NCBI GenBank assembly: GCA_964035545.1
Contig: OZ037768.1
Span: 21,545,119 to 21,609,118 of the forward strand
Source: Bugula neritina
Taxonomy: Eukaryota > Animalia > Bryozoa
Length of the DNA: 64,000 nt
Reading direction: 5' to 3'
Position numbers and translations under genes: made by a program. The notes under the pieces were generated by a model. The model had not been told where the DNA came from. It saw only the letters and a program-made list of their open reading frames with translations, and ran no database searches. Below, one piece after another: positions 110 through 26,900 of this stretch (positions are counted from its first letter, which is position 1; each line of letters opens with the position of its first letter).

Positions 110-2351
110 GTACTTCACTGTATTGTGGGGTTTGTTAGATCCAACCCCATGTTGACAGCCTTTCAAGTAGCCTCTAGAGTGTTTGTGGTGTGGGGCATAC
201 TACACTCCGTAGAGAACACTCAGACATCTATAGGCTACACCTTGCTGCTAGCTGCTTGGACTATCACCGAGATTATCAGATATCTTTATTACGTTCTCAA
301 CATAGCCAAAATTGAGGCATATCCTTTAGTGTGGCTCAGGTAGGCTGTCTACTGTATCCACCCTTAGAATGACACGTGAATGTTGGCTATATTGTTATGG
401 AGTCCTTAGGTTACATATGGCAAATATATTAAATGAAATTGTATATTGTAGTTTTAATCATTAATGTTTTATTGAAGTTTTTAGTTTGTTTTTGTTTGTA
501 GTTGTCAATGACTTTTTATAGACCGGGCAATTGTTGTACGGAACTGCACCCATGATAAGTAATACTAGTAATTAGTACACAGTCTTGTTTTGTAGATACA
601 CATTGTTCATCATTCTCTACCCTATTGGAGTCACTGTAAGTATTCAGCCACTAGGGGGAGTCTCGTAACTTTTATCAGTCATAACTAAAATATCTTCTAA
701 CTATAGACAAGCGTACTTTTATACTATAGAAACCTCGTAACAAGAGTTTGCTAAGTTTGCTTCCAGAACGTAAAAGTGATTTAACTGCCCAAACCAAAGG
801 TTTCTTTTTGTAACTGGGAGTTGTCTGCTTTTACTAAAATTGATAGCTTGATAACAATGCCTGTTTCTGATGATTATTTATTCTGCATCTGCACCCTTCT
901 TTACCAAAATAGTCACATTGAATAGCATTTACTGCTATGTATATTCAACTTCTACAACAGCTACACATCTGACGTTATAATATTTTTATAACTAGCAGTA
1001 ATTATTTTATGTTTTGTGGTTATCTTCTCTTTTAATTTTCTTTCTCGTTTTGCAGGGAGAACTTACCTCTATATATCAAGCTTTACCTCAAGTTGCTCAA
1101 ACTGGACTATATTCTATAAAGCTGCCCAATAAGATGAACTTTGCCTTTGACTACCAATATGCTCTTGTATTGATAATGCTCAGCTACATCCCCAGTGAGT
1201 TTATTCAATCTATGAATTACGTTGTACTGCTTACTTTTGTACGATACTGTGTAGGATTTCCATGCTATGTTTTTGTTCCGAGAAAAAACTGTTCAAACTT
1301 GCCTAAATATATTCTGTAGTCAGCTGTCTGAGTGTATAAGCTGTAACATACGCTGCTTGTTTTCTCTTTCTAGTCAATTTGATAAGCTTTGAAATGAGAT
1401 GAGCACCTATCTCTCCATGTTGTTCCCTCATTCTCAGTCTTAACACCAATTAGGGCTGAATTTTTCACTGCTTTATGGTCATTTGTTAGTCCCATATTCT
1501 GAATGTGCTTTATTGAATTGGCCGTAAAAAATTTTCACGTAAATGGATTAAATGTTTTAGAATTTTGGTATACACCTGTACAGTGTGCTGTTATCTTTAA
1601 CTGTTGAAATATACATTGTTGGGTGTAGCGTTACCTCTGCTGCAGCCATTTTAATTTCAATTTATTTAGTTTGTCTTGTCACTAATTCTCGTAGTTTTCT
1701 CTCCTCTCTTTACACGTCGCCCATTCTAGCACACACTGTGTTCAGTTTTAAAGACAAACTCAATTGTAGTGTTAGTTTTTTTCACTTGATCTGAGATGAT
1801 TTTCGGGCCGTTGAAAAGGAGGTGCCCAACATTATGTAGTACAAAGTCGTTGATCAAAAGTAAAAATTTTCATGTTTTTGAAATCAGTCGCCTTTATGCA
1901 AAGTTCCCACGTATATAATTTGTCCTAATTTTCAGAAGTTACATTTGATATGAGAATTTACACTGGTTACAGAAGTGTTAGTTACTTTATAATCACAATA
2001 CATTCTGTTTATATACAACCAAATCGAATAGTGCATTGCATTTAAATGTTTTCTCAAGGTCTGAGGCTAAAATATAAGTGTTGGGGTGCCCTAGTCCTAC
2101 GCCCTTGCTATAGTGCTATACAAACTATAAACTGTCATTTTACTAGACAACCAATTTATCTGCTCAGTTTATTAGTTTTGCCTGACAACCCTTGACAGGT
2201 ATTTAAGCTGCTTTAATTATTACTTTGAATGTATGACAACTCCCATAATTGTGCTGTCATTTGTCTTTTAGTTTTCCCTCAACTTTACCTCCACATGTTT
2301 GCTCAAAGAAAAAAGATAATAGGAGGTGCAGCAAAACCAAAGCCAGAGTAG
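110..2351 (+). CDS. HACD: Very-long-chain (3R)-3-hydroxyacyl-CoA dehydratase (HACD/PTPLA family), 3' part; 5' exons lie upstream of the window
   Basis: Exons 110-339, 596-635, 1056-1194 and 2272-2351 join through GT-AG introns in consistent phase. Translation includes [44 protein letters not shown] (catalytic Tyr/Glu motif of HACD/PHS1) and [18 protein letters not shown]. It ends KPKPE*, a KxKxx ER-retrieval signal. Paralog (HACD1 vs HACD2) cannot be resolved. Confidence 0.93.
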
Positions 2352-2925
2352 CAAGAAAATTCTTCAAATCAACAAAATTTACTTACGGTTTTTAATGGAA
2401 GCCCAGCTGTGACTGTATATAATCGTACCTACAGTGTTGTGATTGACACATTATTTGTAAATTGTATTGTTTGAAGTGTGTTATTAAAAAGGAGCCCCTG
2501 CCAAAGAGGTGTACTTTACAAAATTTGGTGAAGTAAATACTTTGATTTTATTTATATTTTTAACCAATGAAATGATTTGTAGGAAATAAATATAAATTGT
2601 TTTTTGATTTCAAATTATGTACAAATATTGTTACCATAGACCATCTTTCAGATCATAAATTAGGAAATGACACAAAATAGTTTATAACTTAAAAATAACT
2701 TATAAATAGCCTTATTCTATTGGCTGTCAGTTTTTTCCTTGAATAGCACTTCCTAGCTGAATCCATTGATGCAAGACTCAGTCACAGTTTTCATATTGAT
2801 GCAATGATTATGCACTCTACAGGATGCGGCCAGTGTACAGCAAGTAGAAATTTTAGTGCCCCAAATCAATCTTTACTGTCAAGTGAGATGTGGTCAAATA
2901 TGATTTCTCTCAACAATATCTGATG

Positions 2926-5900
2926 TCAGCATTCAGCTGTGGTATAGTAGAACACAGCTCTTTCTAACATAGGGGCTGTTAGGGAGCCTTCCTCATCCTC
3001 TCGCCAACCTTATATAATAATAAGAACTTCAGCTACGGTCTCATCACAATTACAGGCATAAACAGAATGTCCTTACAGAAAACTGCTTTACATTCAAAAT
3101 CAATTCCAATTTTGATTCAACATAAATAAATAGTTCCGTTTAAACTAAGTTACTTTGTCTGAAAAATAATATGTTTTCAGCGATCTGATTTTCTCTTCTA
3201 ACTGTAGCGTACCGCTATATATTGTTTAGTATAACAAAGTAAAATCATTCAGTATTTTACCATCAGTGCTCATTATATAACACAAAACTGAGAGTACCTG
3301 CACGAGTCATTCGACTGACTAAGTGTGAGTATGATTGGGGGAGATCAGGATTGAATTCTTCTACTTCACTTCCTGAAAGATCAGAGTTTGGATTAACATA
3401 GAATTTATAAATATGTCTGATGTTTACAAAATTTATTAGAGCAAACTTGTGTAGACTAGGGAAAAGTGATGGATATATAAATATTACAATGAAATTCCAT
3501 AACAGAAAATAAGACTTTCTCTAGTAGAGTTTACCCACGCATGCTAAAAAGAACTATCACATGGGAGCTGATATAAAATGCTAGTTGACTTTAGATTGTT
3601 CAAAATATTAACTTGAAGGCGTTTTATTAATATAATTCATTCAGTTATTTCTGTTTAGAAAACTGGAACAAACTCGGTACTGTGACTGATGGAGACATGC
3701 AGTACAGCCAGTGCATGATGATGCACATGTTAAAGATGTAAAAGCAGTGGTGTGAAAAGCATGAGTGTAGGTCTATATAGTGTGTGCTAATATCACCTAG
3801 AAAACATGAAGTTGCTAGAACATAGTAATCCGATAACACAGAACAATGTTGAGCTAATACTTCCTTTTTCAACAAAGTCACAGTCTTGTCATCGGAAAGC
3901 AGTACAGAGGTCAATGGTTCTGTTAGATATATTTATAATGACAACCAAAAGGCTCAATAAAGCAAGCATTAGCAAACTTGAACATAGTAAAGAAGTTGTC
4001 TGTCCTAAACTATGTTCTACATAGAAATATCGCACAAAAATTTATATAATGTCTAACATTAGTGCAGTGCTTCACTAATAATGAATCAAAATATACTTTT
4101 GTTACCTGAAGAAGCTGTCAGTGACATGCGCCGCAGGTTTCCTTGACCAGAAGAATTCCTACCTGAAATATAAGACAGAATGACTCATACATAGCCTATA
4201 TAAAAGATAACAATGAGGGAATATCCCTCACGGTCTATTCTCTCCTAGTTTGCATAAATATGGAAATGGCCAAAACATACCAAGTCAAAAATTAAAACTT
4301 AAGTTTTAATAACCAAGTGCATGAATAATACTCAAATAAAATCTTATCAAAGTTACAGATGCAAAATTTATGATTAATAGATTAACAGTGTGTGCAAAAT
4401 ATCTCTTTTTACTGATATTTCATAATTGCTTGCACCATAGCATTTGTTAATTCAGCCGTGAATATTTTGCTGTGACAAATATCATCATTTCGTAATTACT
4501 GATTAATTAGTAAAGATTGCAAAATAGATTGGCTAAGCACAAAGCACAGGCTATTCATGGTTGGGTGCTTAGTCTATACTCCAAGAATGTCTATTAAATC
4601 ATTTATGGAAGAGGGCTTCATATACGTAAAATGACGGTGCTACAACCAATGAGGGGGTGGTGGAACTCTGGGCCAATCATTCCCCACTTTTCAAAGCTCA
4701 ACATACTGTTACTGAACCACACTGCAGTAATCAAACGGGATAATAGTGTGGTTGTCATGACAACCAATGAGATAAATGCCTAAAATAGTTTTAACTATGT
4801 CATACCTGATCATGCTTCAGTTATCGCCTTATCTCATTTTGTTAAAACCAAAAACATAGCAAAGCATGGAGCAGTTGGAAGCATGTAAACTTCAGCTATG
4901 GAGGTCAACGTAACACTTAATACTACGAGCTCTAACTATACGAATATATCAACAGTGCCTACAGGAACCACAATGACTTCTTCTGGAATACCAAACTCCT
5001 CTCTCATTATTATAATAGCTAGTCTAGGGGGAACTGCTGTTGTATTAGTACTAATTTTAGCCGTCATCTTCTGCAGACGTAAAAGTCAAAAGAGTAACTT
5101 TGCGTCTGTTGAAGAAGTCTCGAATGAAAGAGGAGCGCATAGAAACCTTTCTTTCAACACAACAAACAGCGATGAGCTTCAAGAAAACGACGATCCAATC
5201 TATCGACCAACACCGAACATTGAGGCTGATAAAGAAAGTGAAGTGAAAGATAGTGTGTATTCAGAAGTGCTACCAAAAGAGCGCTTACCTAGTACTCAAT
5301 CTCAGAATAGTGACTATGAAAATGCAGAAACTATTGCACATATCAACTCTACAGCAAAAGACTTAGCTCCACCGCCTCTGCATAAGCGAGGAAGTGGCCC
5401 CATAACTACTAACCTTTTCAGACAAGGCACAAAAGCCTATCATTTGTACAGAAACGCATTACAAGATTATGAAATCGATCCGAAAAGTCTCTCTATGATT
5501 GCCAAAATTGGCAAGGGAAATTTTAGTACTGTGTACTCTGGTATGGCAACATCACTGCCGTACACTGATGCAAACAATCAGCTTGTGGCTATCAAAACTA
5601 TGAAGAGCTCCGCTTCAGATTCCGATAAACAGGAGTTTCTGTATGAATTTGAGATCATGAAACTGACCAACACTCTACAACACAAAAACATAACTAAACT
5701 GCTAGCCTCCGTCACTACCAGCTATCCCTGCATGTTAGTCTTAGAACTCATGCCAAACGGCAACCTTCGGAACTTTCTTCGAGCAACTCGGTCACAGGAT
5801 ATATACTACAATCTCCATAGCAACAGTAACAGTCTCAGTGAACGACAGCTCTTGCAATTCGGAATAGATATAGCAAGTGGCATGGAAGGTTTGGCGGATC

Positions 5901-8900
5901 TTCAACTCTTGCATAGAGATCTGGCTGCAAGGAATGTCCTGCTAGACTCAAACCTGACCTGTAAAATCGCTGACTTTGGATTCGCCAAAGACATATTAAA
6001 CAAGCCAGTGTATAGAAGCAAGTCAATACTTCACAGAGCTCGGCCTGTGAGGTGGCTAGCACCAGAATCTCTATTTTACTTCAAACACAGTATAATGAGT
6101 GACGTCTGGTCATACGGTATCGTACTCTGGGAAATTGTTTCTTTGGGAAACCTGCCGTATCCTGGCATGAACGTAAAAGAGGTAAATATACTTTTCAAAC
6201 TTGTATAACTACTGATCATTTCTCATGAGCTCTCTATATGCAGCCTTGACTGAATTTTATTTTCCGCCTCTATGACGGTTAGTTTGACACCAGAGGCTAA
6301 ACCAGACAGTTTTTAAAACCACAAAATAGTGTTGAAGGCGCAAAGCATTTTGAAACTATCAACATTTCCTCAACTATAATTTAAAAAAAGCTGTTCACTA
6401 TAATTATTGTCAGTTAAATTTAGGAGGAGCAAATTTTGAAAATCCTAACTACTAGACATGGTTTCACAAAACTATAACATTGCTTTTTAAAATATATGAA
6501 ACACTTTTTCTAAGTTAGAGCTAGTAGAGCTAGCTCAACCGCAATAGGCTAATAGGGATTGTCGAAGCCATTAAACCAGGGATTAGGTGAAAGATGAGCT
6601 GATTTAATTTAATTCTCTCAGTTGGACTTCTTGAAAAACTCAACAGCAATATAAGAGGTTCAGTTCAACATACTTGAGAGATAAAACTTATGACAAGTTT
6701 TCAGTAAATGACACAAATTAGTTTATTAGCAACTACATAGTTACTGTAGGGCGTAGGTCGTAGGAGGTATCATTTGCCTCAGCTGCAGAACTACTAAATA
6801 ACAGTAAATCTCTAGGTAATTTAGAAACACTTTTCTATGGATAATGACATTTTTATTTATTGCTACGAAACAGATCCTACTGCCATAAAATGCCTAACAA
6901 CTTAAGGTGACAACCCCCATCCATCATGACACTGACATTTTACAATCAGTCTCAGTGTGGGCTGACAAATGGCAAGTTGGAGCAGTGTTAGCAGGTGCCT
7001 AAGTCACACATTTCTATGATAATGATTGGTTTACAAGGAGTCATAAAGATACAATTCGCACTTCATGGTTGTATAATATTAAATATGGATAGGAGAAAAT
7101 TTCAGCAGTTCCTATAAGTCAAGTGTCCTGTAGGTTACGCATACTATTAACCAACGCCAAACAATTGGCACGGAAAACTAGCATTGCGTTTGTCGCAAGG
7201 AGGAAAGTTTTTGAGGAAAAGTTTTAGCCAAGCGGCGCAATTTTGAGTGAAAAGTTGGACATCAAAACAACGCAGTAGATCATACGTCACCGCAACACGG
7301 TGTATAATGTCATCATGCACTTTTAGAGTGGTAATGCAGCTGTGAGCTAAACATGATTTGTGTGCAGCTACATACACACAAGGGGAATACACTAGAAGTA
7401 TATAGTATATAACCTAAAGCACTGCCATATACTCGTATATTTTATACTTCCATCTCAATATACTATGCAAGTCTTAACAGTTTATATGTTAGTGTAATGC
7501 ACTTGAAAATATACATAAATTCTTGTAGTATATATGGCTAAGCTTTGTAGCTTACATTATTAAATTCTGTACTACATACTGTTGAAATTGGTAGCTCAAA
7601 CAGTAGTATATTCTGTTGAACTCTGTATTTCACATTGTTGAGATCTTCAGTTCACAATGTTCGACTCTGTTCAGTACAATGTTGAACTCTGTACTATACA
7701 CTGTTGTACTCTGTAGTTTACATTGTTTTACTCTGTACTGTACATTGTTGCAGGTTCCAACTCAACTGTCTAAGGGATACAGAATGCAGTGCCCGAAGCA
7801 CTGCTCGCCCGATCTGTACAGAGTCATGAGCTGCTGCTGGGAGGAGACGCCCAAGTCTAGACCTCCGTTCCACCAACTGGTTGATAAAATGAGACAACTC
7901 CTTGACCAGGCAACCAGACTCATAGATATGGGCAAGATAGAGGACGATGATGACTATATAGAAGTGCTACCTCCTTTGCACCAAGAGCTCTTCACCGAGT
8001 ACCCGACTGTAGAATCTAGTAGTGCAGATGAAACAGACTAGACTTCTTTGTATTTATTGCAATATTGTATATTTATTATTTCAAAGTTTAACAATGCCTT
8101 GAGGTATGATATAAAGATAACATGTATAACAATGCTGTTTGTATGAAATAGTCATGCGATATAACACAAACTGATAATTTAAAATAAGCCTGGGCGTATT
8201 ATAGTTCATGTAGGCGAGTAAAAAGTCACATGAAATCAGGCATATGACCTGGACATGTATATAAAAATGCTATTTATTATCATTCAATACACCTTATCAC
8301 ATTATTTCTCAGAGTCATTGGTATTTTCACCGCATTACCTTTTGTTTAAAATGATTGAATAGAGATAAAATTAGACATTTCAGTGATAAGTGCGGAAATT
8401 AGAGAAATGATAATTTATTCAGCCGTAATGACACATACAGTAAAAAGAAACATGTTTTAGTTATAACACAAAAAACAAATTTCGTTTTTTTAAGTCACTC
8501 AGCTACTAAAAACATTGTGTGTAGCAAAGTAATTACTAAAAAACATTTAAAAAGTTCACACTCGCAGCTAGTTGCAACCAGGAGAAACCAAATGCTAATT
8601 TTTAAATTTCATATCTTCTTAAAACATTACAAAAATGTGGAAACTAATAAATGAACTGTCAGTTTTTGTTATAATAAACACATTACCAATTAGTTTACAT
8701 TACTAATTGCTTCCTTTTGCATTGTATAGCTAATAATTGAAAGTATTTCTGTTGACAATTGATAGGGCTCTGGAAACGGATATTATTACTGGGGAAAAAA
8801 TCACCATGGAATCTGCTATAATAATGAAAATTATGCATTTAGAAATACTCAATAAAAAGTATACGAGAGAGATGAATCCAAAAGTAGAATAGAGGGAAGT

Positions 8901-23900: not shown

Positions 23901-26900
23901 TGCAGACATGTTTTGCGTTGAAAATGCTATTTTAACAGCATTAGGTAGTATTTTTGATGCTAAATTTCTATTTTGCTTTATTGTAGTGCCAATAAACGCT
24001 CTGCTGGTGTCTACATTCAGCCTCAGAATCTGTTCTGGTGTGGGATCTGTACTAGCTATTGCCGGAGTTCTCTCCTCCGCATTTGCCTTCAAACTCTGGT
24101 TTCTAATAGTTGGATTCTCATTATTTGCAGGTAATCATTATAGATATTCTTTAGCTCATCTAGTAGTAGATATTTAGCTTGACTTTAGTAAAATGAACTT
24201 TATACTATGATATGATGTTTAATTTGAACAGGCATAATTTTCCACGTTTTTATTACATTTGAGTGTGCATTTACCACTTTCTTGAACAGATACAAAGTAC
24301 AAACTTGATATTAAGAATTATGTACTCATTGATGGGAAAGACAACTCTAATTTTGATTTTGGGTTTATACTTTAGATCACAGCATGCAATAACATTGTTG
24401 TTGCATTTTGTGAATGGCCCAATCTTGTCCATTTTTTGTGGTGCGAATGCAAAGCTATTTCAAAACCTACCATTATAAAAGCATGATTACGAAACTATCT
24501 GCTTTGTGTGTACCTAGACCGCCAGATGCTAGAAGCTTGAGTCATGACCATCTTGCATGCCAAGCCTAGCCAGAAATAAATAACTCGTAGGGATGACTTT
24601 ACAGTCACTTGTTCTTTAACATGTTAGTGATAAAAATACTCAAGTGAATGTTTCTAAACTGAGTGCTGGCCACTCCTGCCCATGTATTTGACATTGATAC
24701 GAAATTGGGTTTACATAGCTGCTTCTATTTTTATCCATAAACTTGTGAAAGTGTGGTGCTGTGATATTAATGCTAATAGTATATGCTGTTTGCCAACAGG
24801 TTATGGAGTGAGCATGCTATGGACTGCTACCATCAAAATAGTGCCGCACTATTTCAAGAAGAGGCAGAAAATGGCGTATATGGCAACAGGCATAGGCTAT
24901 GGCATGGGTAGAGCTATATTCCCCTTCATCATTGAAGCCATCCTAGAACAAACCACCTATAGAAACACAATGCTCTACACCACAATATTCTTTGGACTCT
25001 CCCTCACAGCTCCCATATTCTACAGGGAGCAGCTACCAAAAGAAAAACCGAAATCCGCTAAAAGTTTAATAAAATCCTACACGCACCCATTGAGAAGGTA
25101 TATAGCACCATTTCACCTGGCCAATGGCTACCTGTGGAACGCAGAGTTGACAGGGGTAGCTGTGATTCTGTTCACCTACATTGATCACACCACTGAGGGG
25201 GAGCGCGTCGCTGCCACTGTACAAACCATCAACGGTGTGGCGCAGATGGTTGGTGCTATCGGACTCACTCTGCTCCTCATGAAAGTCAAACTGAACCACT
25301 ACATCTTGCAGATTGTCTTCAACTTGCTCATTGGCTGCGTATGCTTCCTGATTGGTGCTTACAACAATGTCTACTCATTCTATGTTAGTGCCGGTATTCT
25401 TGGCCTTATGGAGGCAATAATGGTTGGCAACATTACGTGCGTCTGTCACCATTTGTATCCAGAGAAAGACGTTGTCTATGCATTCGGCTTCCATGAGACA
25501 ATGGGAGGCATTGCCGGGTTCGTGGCCCCCTACACTGCTGGACTTCTGCAGGAGAAATATGGATTTAATGTCGGATTCTATTACTTGGGCTGTAATTCTA
25601 TACTGGGTGGTGTAGTGTTTATCATCGCTGGACTCGGCAGGAAGTCAACGTGGAAACACAGGCCCGTGGAGAGCGAAGAGCCGAGCCCAACGGACACGGA
25701 GGCATCTACAGGGGAGCCGGAGAAAAAGAGTGTATCTGACATAGATGATTCATCCCCAGAAATTTCACCCAACGATGTCAAGTTTGTTGAGAGCAATGGG
25801 CACACGTCGACAGCGGAAGACACAGATTCGGCAGCCGATAAGACGGCAGCAGACAACCCAACATACATAGACGATACAACCAAACTCTGATAACCAAACT
25901 TTGTAATTGACAATCACGCTGACTTAGCGAAAGTGTATGCATTACCGTTGAAGGGACTTATGGGCTATGTAAAAGCATGAACATATGATATACCCGAATG
26001 CATAAACACTATCATAACAATATGAATAAAACTTAATAATTTATACACATAACCTGTTTCATTATGTTAAATTGTTTATAGTTTGTATAGAACTATGTTT
26101 CAAAAGATATTATGCTCAGTATAATAAAAATGTTTTCAATTTAATTTTGATATGTGCAAAAATAAAATATCTTAACACCTTATAAGTTATTATAAATGTG
26201 TACACCAATCACTGCAAAATTCTATTGTTTATTGTTATAGCAGACATTTTGGCAAGGTTTCAAACTGCCCAGGGTAACCCATTGCTCCGCTGCACAAATA
26301 CAACTTTAGGTGCTGAGGCTATAGTATAATTCTGCATAGCTCAAGTTCATAATTTTTGGCTTAGATTGTATAACTTCTCCTGCTACAACTATCTAATAGA
26401 ACTCTGGATATTTGAAAAATTGCAACTACCCTACTTTCACATTTAGAACCAATATTTATTTTAAATGTAATACTTCTTTAACAGATGGATATAATATATT
26501 ATAATGACAATTCACAAACAAATGAAATTAATTGAATGTTTACAACTATATTTTCATTTTTCAACTCTTCTGTTATTCCCAAAAATCAGAATACTAACAA
26601 CAATCAATAGCTAAGCTCCTAGAAGGGTGAGGTACATCCCCTCACCCTTCTACCTCCACCCCACCCTCCAAGTAGCAAACACTATTTTGGTGTATGACCC
26701 TACGCTATGAACTGAGACACACTGATGGCACATTAACCTATAACAACCAAGAGATGAAAGAGTGTTTGGTATTTCATTCAAGTGTTGGAATCTAGATTTG
26801 CCATCAAAAGATGGAGTTACATTAAACTTGAACAATTGAATGCAGGTATTAAGCTGAGGTATAAATATCCTGTGAATATTGTACCTTTTATTTTGTAAAC

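Follow-up and report, generated by a model that had tools for sequence, protein, structure and literature searches.

Can a receptor tyrosine kinase do without almost all of its receptor head? This question is raised by a gene in a 64,000-nucleotide stretch of the genome of the bryozoan Bugula neritina (assembly GCA_964035545.1, contig OZ037768.1, forward-strand positions 21,545,119 to 21,609,118). We refer to the whole stretch as the window and give all positions in its own numbering. An earlier note, made from the letters of the window, had placed a receptor tyrosine kinase with scarcely any ectodomain at 4898-8041. We find that this locus is an intact two-exon gene under strong purifying selection in a bryozoan of the Bugula neritina complex, and that its predicted product is a single-pass membrane tyrosine kinase, composed of a sequon-rich stub, a transmembrane (TM) helix, a disordered juxtamembrane region, a kinase domain and a tail. 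Taken together, the evidence favors, with a probability of roughly 0.65, a headless, bryozoan-only, Cad96Ca/Stitcher-like membrane tyrosine kinase that would be activated by lateral association.

The open reading frame (ORF) runs on the forward strand from the ATG at 4898. Exon 1 (4898-6181) encodes 428 residues and is followed by a GTAAAT donor at 6182; the sole intron (6182-7753) ends in a TTGCAG acceptor, and exon 2 (7754-8041) encodes 95 further residues before the TAG stop at 8039-8041. Each exon was searched by itself, and the numbering of residues 429-523 comes from simple counting across the splice. The junction itself, with KE on one side and VPTQL on the other, is present in the GenBank model KAF6040239, the homologous position is interrupted by an intron in the Watersipora RefSeq model, and the read-through ORFs of 15 homologues mark the same intron position. 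A single position, after the [KR][ED] of kinase subdomain IX, is common to all family members, and ahead of subdomain IX, back to the start codon, the bryozoan genes have no intron. We also observe a tandem repeat at 7614-7750 (22-nt unit, 6.2 copies, 73% matches), which ends 3 nt before the 3' splice site of the intron.

The first 35 residues (4898-5002) constitute the entire predicted extracellular part. As the earlier note had described, they are Ser/Thr-rich, carry five N-glycosylation sequons and lack a signal peptide, and both composition and hydropathy bear this out. In fact, 16 of these residues are Ser or Thr and none is Lys or Arg, while the sequons are NVT4, NTT8, NYT13, NIS16 and NSS33. 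Five sequons per 36 residues are rare among random 36-mers of whole-protein composition (P = 1e-5) and among shuffles of the same 36 residues (P = 0.007). No hydrophobic stretch was found before the TM helix, the highest 9-residue hydropathy there being 0.34, and no Pfam domain was detected in the stub, for which the predicted local distance difference test score (pLDDT) is about 30. Hydropathy peaks at 2.92 over residues 36-58, which together with the following Cys59 occupy 5003-5074 and lead into the basic stop-transfer sequence CRRKSQK. An AlphaFold2 run on exon 1 with a 16-row alignment, in which the TM helix and the N-lobe of the kinase alone are usable (mean pLDDT 46), predicts a helix over residues 33-69 at a pLDDT of 78-87.

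The orientation of this helix is suggested by its flanks. Because no basic residue precedes it and four follow it, and because the sequons lie on its N-terminal side, the positive-inside rule predicts an N-terminus outside the cell, that is, a type III reverse signal-anchor topology. The stub would then be glycosylated, and Cys59 may be palmitoylated. The protein thus combines one hallmark of a receptor-type kinase, a single TM helix N-terminal to the kinase, oriented here by the positive-inside rule, with the absence of another, since only 35 residues before the helix leave no folded extracellular ligand-binding domain. This layout recurs across the family. All 16 aligned members have a stub, of 16-46 residues, followed by the helix, and none has a signal peptide. 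In the helix, L50 is invariant, as is C59 behind it, at least 90% of members keep L43 and L54, and small residues form a motif, [SA]-L-[GS]-[GA]. The sequence of the stub is not conserved between species, while its sequons and Ser/Thr richness are kept in 13 of the 16 members, the number of sequons varying from zero to five and three members having none. Comparison therefore supports the initial proposal of a single-pass kinase without a folded ectodomain, its outward N-terminus being read from the sequence.

Following the helix, residues 60-198 (5075-5491) comprise the basic stop-transfer segment and a juxtamembrane region that is predicted to be disordered, with a pLDDT of 25-33 over residues 70-170. 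A long, tyrosine-bearing juxtamembrane region had been proposed at about 130 residues; the region stands, at about 140 residues, and reaches lengths of 140-200 residues in the bryozoan proteins. It holds Y102, Y121, Y140 (in D-Y-E-N), Y181, Y184 (in Y-R-N) and Y191. Y184 and Y191, along with Y303, Y304 and Y372 of the kinase domain, are invariant in the family. The DYxN motif is found in 12 of 16 members, every member of one subclade (clade A) has two to four YxN sites, and a basic motif, [KR][KR]-x-S, is conserved ahead of the kinase. A further juxtamembrane motif reads N-L-F-R-x-x-T-K-A-Y. All four tyrosine motifs highlighted earlier were located in the sequence: SVYSEV at Y121, DYENA at Y140, the kinase-insert YYNL at Y303/304 and the tail motif DDDDYIEV at Y496. 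The reading of SVYSEV as an immunoreceptor tyrosine-based inhibitory motif did not survive comparison, however. In the window the segment fits [SIVL]-x-Y-x-x-[IVL], but orthologues have S-Y-A-E-[VIT] with E or G at -2, some have T at +3, and the tyrosine is absent from the other subclade (clade B). With the motif not conserved in orthologues, we reject an inhibitory receptor of this type.

The kinase domain begins at residue 199 and continues to the end of exon 1 (residues 199-428, 5492-6181; subdomains I-IX), with subdomains X-XI and the C-terminal tail encoded by exon 2. Residues 199-427 of exon 1 match positions 2-211 of PF07714 (E = 3.4e-65), and residues 3-45 of exon 2 match positions 215-257 (E = 6.6e-11). 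The two pieces adjoin exactly and therefore form one kinase domain. Among solved structures in the PDB, FGFR1 (163 bits) and CSF1R (162 bits) are the top matches, with all catalytic motifs aligned. VAIK (K233, 5594-5596), the alphaC Glu, HRDLAARN (D341, 5918-5920), DFG (D359, 5972-5974) and PVRWLAPE are intact, so that the catalytic core of a tyrosine kinase is complete, and the catalytic residues are invariant in the 16 family members. The glycine loop reads GKGNFS, and the activation loop has one tyrosine, Y372 (6011-6013). Sequence and FGFR1 alignment thus agree with the earlier description of intact catalytic K, E, HRD..RN and DFG, a Ser in the glycine loop and a lone activation-loop Tyr, and they predict a catalytically competent domain. 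In the tail, Y496 (D-D-D-D-Y-I-E-V-L-P-P) and Y511 (F-T-E-Y) belong to a motif, D-Y-[IVC]-[DEN]-x-L-P-P ... [DE]-Y, that is kept in both paralog clades.

That this kinase belongs to a lineage-specific family, as had been conjectured, is supported by profile search and by phylogeny, which point to a bryozoan branch. A profile of 16 family sequences, compared exhaustively with 1.84 billion representative sequences, retrieved just three full-length clusters at 50% identity above 600 bits (622-728 bits) plus fragments, while single-domain proteins outside the family scored at most 261 bits; all named family members are bryozoan. Long proteins from Montipora and others that score similarly or higher are multi-kinase fusion models and not close kin. 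In the maximum-likelihood tree the bryozoan clade has a support of 99/100 and a long stem of 0.93, and it divides into the two subclades, A and B, each with a Bugula and a Watersipora gene. Since each subclade has both genera, the duplication predates them. The genome search for paralogs that had been suggested yielded exactly one, on contig C5, 60% identical in the kinase and of the same design; none lies within the window. We note that the third-best genomic match (C1:17108370-17112020, minus strand, 835-2199) is an intronless, kinase-like ORF of 454 residues, in which HKDIAAHN replaces HRD...RN and DFG is missing; this ORF is unrelated to the family and probably a pseudokinase of another receptor tyrosine kinase family. 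We also note that the Watersipora subatra orthologue (OY755160, 10001-13355) is nested in a gene with a GSAP-16 domain on the opposite strand, which is not so in the window.

Purifying selection could be gauged within the B. neritina complex. Contigs from three read sets (SRR4020080/82/84) are 91-95% identical to the window at the DNA level and carry GenBank-type residues; the window therefore represents a sibling lineage of the complex. Between the lineages, we count 47-51 synonymous and 11-12 non-synonymous changes in exon 1, for a ratio of non-synonymous to synonymous substitution rates (dN/dS) of 0.055-0.066. The kinase part has the lower ratio, 0.02-0.03, against about 0.2 for the stub, TM helix and juxtamembrane region, and paralog B has a value of 0.076. 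As a separate observation, the synonymous rate (dS) between the Bugula lineages is 0.28-0.32 in the kinase part (5492-6181), against 0.08 in the juxtamembrane region and 0.12 in paralog B; the intron diverges by about 0.09 per site. The kinase part thus has about three times the dS found elsewhere (Fisher P = 0.003 versus the juxtamembrane region and 5e-7 versus the intron).

Where does this kinase come from? By its sequence signatures it is Cad96Ca/Stitcher-like, although strict membership fails, as the defining cadherin ectodomain is lacking. The nearest single-domain outsiders are arthropod Cad96Ca-type receptor kinases, some with a Pfam cadherin repeat. Shared with them are Y-x-N-[LM]-H-G-x-S in the kinase insert, D-F-G-F-A-[KR]-D, a lone activation-loop Tyr in x-Y-[EK]-[RS]-K-S and, in the tail, D-Y-I-[ED] followed by a second Tyr. 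Among the 125 proteins compared, these signatures occur only in the bryozoan family, in a relative from Lingula and in Cad96Ca-type proteins, and in no FGFR with immunoglobulin (Ig) domains. The reverse search points the same way: with a cadherin-bearing Cad96Ca-type protein as query, the two paralogs are the best matches in the Bugula genome (208 and 185 bits), the next scoring 117. The Watersipora orthologues also bear the automatic RefSeq name 'Cad96Ca-like'. No cadherin repeat, in contrast, was matched in this protein, in three further family or related proteins checked, or anywhere in the window.

The kinase-domain phylogeny that had been called for was run with arthropod Cad96Ca, echinoderm, Lingula, bilaterian FGFR-type and bryozoan sequences, and it gave a partial answer. 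It upholds the bryozoan clade and rejects a grouping with FGFR, while backbone support is weak. Arthropod Cad96Ca, echinoderm, Lingula and bryozoan sequences form a loose group (73/95), in which Lingula is sister to the bryozoans (76/82). In approximately unbiased (AU) tests, a clade of bryozoans with arthropod Cad96Ca is not rejected, but not established either (p = 0.23); an FGFR origin, as a clade with 12 bilaterian FGFR-type rows, is rejected (p = 0.0145).

The Lingula relative hints at how the head may have been lost. This closest outgroup in the tree, from Lingula anatina (LFEI02001070, 601-8536), is named 'Tie-1' in RefSeq and has 334 residues. Its locus bears, on one strand, seven kinase exons (5954-8536), preceded by a TM exon that is unannotated (about 4780-4880) and by Ig/fn3 exons (601-4406) that are unannotated or annotated separately; 'Tie-1' is probably the 3' part of a split model. 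The six introns of the Lingula kinase region include none at the bryozoan position, and other tyrosine kinases of the Bugula genome match in exon-sized pieces. We propose as the family's origin a headed Cad96Ca-like receptor whose ectodomain was lost. Because the bryozoan gene is nearly intronless, compared with six introns in the Lingula kinase region, one possible route would be a 5'-truncated retrocopy that acquired a promoter and, at a later time, a single intron.

How might such a protein signal? Having no folded ectodomain, it is not expected to bind a protein ligand directly. Activation should instead proceed by lateral association through the conserved face of the TM helix, with L43, G44-G45, L50 and L54, either as self-association that depends on expression level or by joining a partner that binds the ligand. 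The kinases would then phosphorylate each other in trans, on Y372 and on their own scaffold tyrosines, whereupon Grb2/Drk would dock at the YxN sites (Y140, Y184 and Y303) and an SH2 protein of the PLCgamma, SHP2 or Src type at pY-I-E-V (Y496). The protein would in this way be the functional equivalent of a kinase fused to a LAT/PAG-like transmembrane adaptor.

Several points weigh against this account. Topology, glycosylation, palmitoylation, dimerisation and SH2 docking are all deduced from sequence. Past the N-lobe the structure model is of low quality, probably because exon 1 cuts the domain short and the alignment is shallow. Motifs and best matches carry the Cad96Ca placement, with a weakly supported backbone in the tree. 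Upstream ATGs that are conserved between the lineages, if they lie in the leader, could damp translation of the kinase. Finally, split gene models do occur, as in Lingula, where Ig/fn3 and TM exons within 1.5 kb upstream were missed.

The alternative that survives best, while still unlikely, places the protein away from the cell surface, as a kinase and scaffold constitutively tethered to endomembranes (endosome, Golgi), as reported for STYK1 and LMTK-type proteins, and regulated by expression level or cytoplasmic inputs. The absence of a ligand-binding domain fits such a role, the [KR][KR]-x-S motif before the kinase could receive input from a Ser/Thr kinase, and a title in the reference list of PMC4898815 (Ding et al. 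2012) has STYK1 colocalizing with EGFR in endosomes. However, the sequons and Ser/Thr richness of 13 of the 16 stubs fit secretory passage to the surface, although an endosomal steady state would still be compatible with them. We retain the surface kinase activated by lateral association as the better account.

A further objection, and a decidedly improbable one, is that the gene lacks part of its 5' end. One or more upstream exons, for a signal peptide and an ectodomain, would then be spliced into the TTCAG at 4891-4895, constitutively or in a single isoform, removing the in-frame TAA that lies 12 nt upstream of the ATG and that we confirm, as reported earlier, at 4886-4888. Two observations lend the objection substance: an AG resembling a splice acceptor stands 3 nt ahead of the ATG, and in the Lingula relative the annotation leaves out the Ig/fn3 and TM exons. 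Most of the evidence runs the other way. Exon 1 encodes its own TM helix, and Met1 is invariant across the 16 aligned homologues, with the stub and then the helix following it in each. At eight loci, from several species and both paralog clades, a stop codon in frame with this Met is found 12-69 nt ahead of it, a purine occupies -3, and the codons between stop and Met are unrelated. RefSeq models of both Watersipora subatra paralogs (XP_067934751 and XP_067931360/61, two isoforms being modeled for one of them) begin at the same Met. As an acceptor the TTCAG is a weak candidate, the 18 nt before its AG being a purine-rich run with just 44% pyrimidine.

The sequence upstream of the start points in the same direction. 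Outside the coding sequence, no stretch is better conserved between the two Bugula lineages than the roughly 200 nt that lead up to the ATG, at 98-99% identity, compared with 81-92% in most of the intron and in the far upstream region. Within this stretch, a block on the forward strand at 4646-4860 contains a 1-nt indel, which argues against coding, and CCAAT boxes at 4646, 4673 and 4764, that is, three within 120 nt, where the whole 64 kb of the forward strand has 62. Because of the indel and the three boxes, we consider it a probable core promoter and 5' leader rather than coding sequence. Two upstream ATGs follow it on the same strand, both kept in the sibling lineage: a 15-codon upstream ORF in good context (4866-4913), which overlaps the main ATG out of frame, and a bare ATG-TAA (4883-4888), whose TAA is the in-frame stop just mentioned.

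Searches for a missing head were likewise negative. A tblastx comparison of the window with the Watersipora gene and its 10 kb upstream recovered the two exons and no shared upstream exon, and no ectodomain-like exon was found in the 4.9 kb upstream of the gene or in the 10 kb upstream in Watersipora. Nothing in the window matches the ectodomain exons of the relatives from Lingula, arthropods and echinoderms. Across the whole Bugula genome, a cadherin-bearing Cad96Ca-type protein finds no match to its residues 1-300, its matches starting at residue 303. The same-strand upstream flank is, moreover, filled by the last exons of a PTPLA/HACD gene. Taken together, these results indicate that the short N-terminus is very probably real.

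Two side observations concern this flank. The terminal exons of the PTPLA/HACD (3-hydroxyacyl-CoA dehydratase) gene lie at 125-343 and 1014-1319 on the forward strand (PF04387, E = 3e-24 and 3e-9). On their 3' side, a second block at 2656-3055 is 95-98% conserved between the Bugula lineages, has no long ORF and may be a 3' untranslated region or a regulatory element.

Very unlikely is the idea that the stub or the TM helix senses something directly, be it a lectin or galectin on the stub's glycans or a small lipophilic ligand, as in the claim that links insect CAD96CA to juvenile hormone. A cluster of sequons beyond chance would suit such a role, but a stub that is not conserved between species, with zero to five sequons and none at all in three members, would not, and the insect claim concerns a protein with a cadherin ectodomain. 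The headless kinase switched on by lateral association is preferred here as well.

A decaying or unexpressed gene copy, which might be suspected from the two broken halves in the GenBank draft annotation, is excluded for practical purposes by an ORF that is intact in this assembly and in the three independent read-set contigs, by a dN/dS of 0.06 with synonymous changes far outnumbering non-synonymous ones, and by orthologues intact in at least six other taxa. The two halves, which are the nearest proteins and come from B. neritina, are KAF6040238, the N-terminal one, and KAF6040239, which is 99% identical over the C-terminal half; the draft is split by apparent frameshifts, one after ...SASDS and one near the C-terminus (ELFT-STRL for ELFTEYPT...).

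Elsewhere in the window, a 402-residue ORF at 24682-25890 on the forward strand has many hydrophobic segments and coincides with the GC peak of the window (0.425). By eye, it looks like a transporter of the major-facilitator or monocarboxylate type.

The significance of this gene lies in an ectodomain-free receptor tyrosine kinase that probably evolved independently and that cheilostome bryozoans keep as two paralogs under strong purifying selection. As a natural system it is suited to asking what turns on a transmembrane kinase that has no head to bind a ligand, whether TM association, partner receptors or expression level, and by which route an ectodomain is lost, possibly via a 5'-truncated retrocopy. 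Public annotation is also corrected, since two hypothetical proteins of B. neritina in GenBank are one gene and the Lingula relative is likewise split. A further thought, to which we give little credence, is that the two headless kinases might serve as shared catalytic subunits of a split receptor system, recruited by kinase-less ligand-binding membrane proteins through TM or juxtamembrane contacts. If so, bryozoans would have put 'head' and 'kinase' in separate genes, an analogue among receptor tyrosine kinases of immunoreceptor/Src-Syk signaling in which the transmembrane kinase carries its own LAT-like scaffold.

Our literature search found no paper describing this bryozoan kinase family or its architecture. 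What is new is an apparently independent, old and conserved two-member headless branch with an adaptor-like scaffold. It is not a new principle, as STYK1, LMTK and the KIN-16 family already show such kinases, and the comparison with known systems helps to locate it. Closest in kinase sequence is Cad96Ca/Stitcher. Stitcher is a Ret-like receptor with one cadherin domain and no known ligand that is activated by wounding (PMC3720245); its intracellular domain recruits Src42A (PMC4876545), and Cad96Ca/Stitcher drives PLCgamma-dependent calcium release (bioRxiv 10.1101/2025.06.02.657513). The bryozoan protein shares its kinase signatures and the D-Y-I-[ED] tail with a second Tyr, and the two are reciprocal best matches in the genome. 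Unlike Cad96Ca/Stitcher, it has no cadherin repeat, signal peptide or ectodomain; it has instead a long juxtamembrane scaffold with YxN sites of its own, and the Y-Y-N of the arthropod tail is absent. FGFR is a further point of comparison. FGFR1 is the best solved-structure match, and a kinase-insert Tyr and a tail Tyr in Y-[LI]-[DE]-[LV] are held in common, the latter presumably analogous to FGFR1 Y766; however, the bryozoan protein has no Ig domains, and the Cad96Ca-type signatures are absent from Ig-bearing matches.

In architecture, which is all that was compared here, the bryozoan protein resembles STYK1/NOK and Lmr/LMTK, with a short N-terminus, a TM helix and a tyrosine-kinase-like domain. 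STYK1 and Lmr are interpreted as receptor tyrosine kinases that probably lost their ectodomains secondarily (PMC4898815). In contrast to them, the bryozoan family, presumably of independent origin in another kinase lineage, has kept all catalytic residues and has added a tyrosine scaffold of 140-200 residues. KIN-15/KIN-16 family proteins of nematodes also have short ectodomains and, like the bryozoan proteins, form a lineage-specific receptor tyrosine kinase family. Two C. elegans proteins that belong to the KIN-16 family, OLD-1 and FLOR-1, act in epidermal signaling and are ligand-independent on overexpression (PMC10523662). Their family is nematode-specific (C. elegans-specific in PMC10523662), expanded and includes pseudokinases, whereas the bryozoan family has two members, both catalytically intact.

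Transmembrane adaptors provide the remaining parallel. They combine a tiny ectodomain with a submembrane palmitoylation motif or cysteines and with YxN and PLCgamma sites (PMC3342071). As in LAT, NTAL, PAG and LAX, the bryozoan protein has a very short ectodomain, one TM helix, a submembrane Cys and a disordered segment with YxN and pY-hydrophobic sites, although in most members one Cys stands in place of CxxC. Whereas the adaptors lack an enzymatic domain and rely on Src/Syk kinases, the bryozoan scaffold is fused to its own kinase. We take this resemblance to concern a possible way of working, and not descent.

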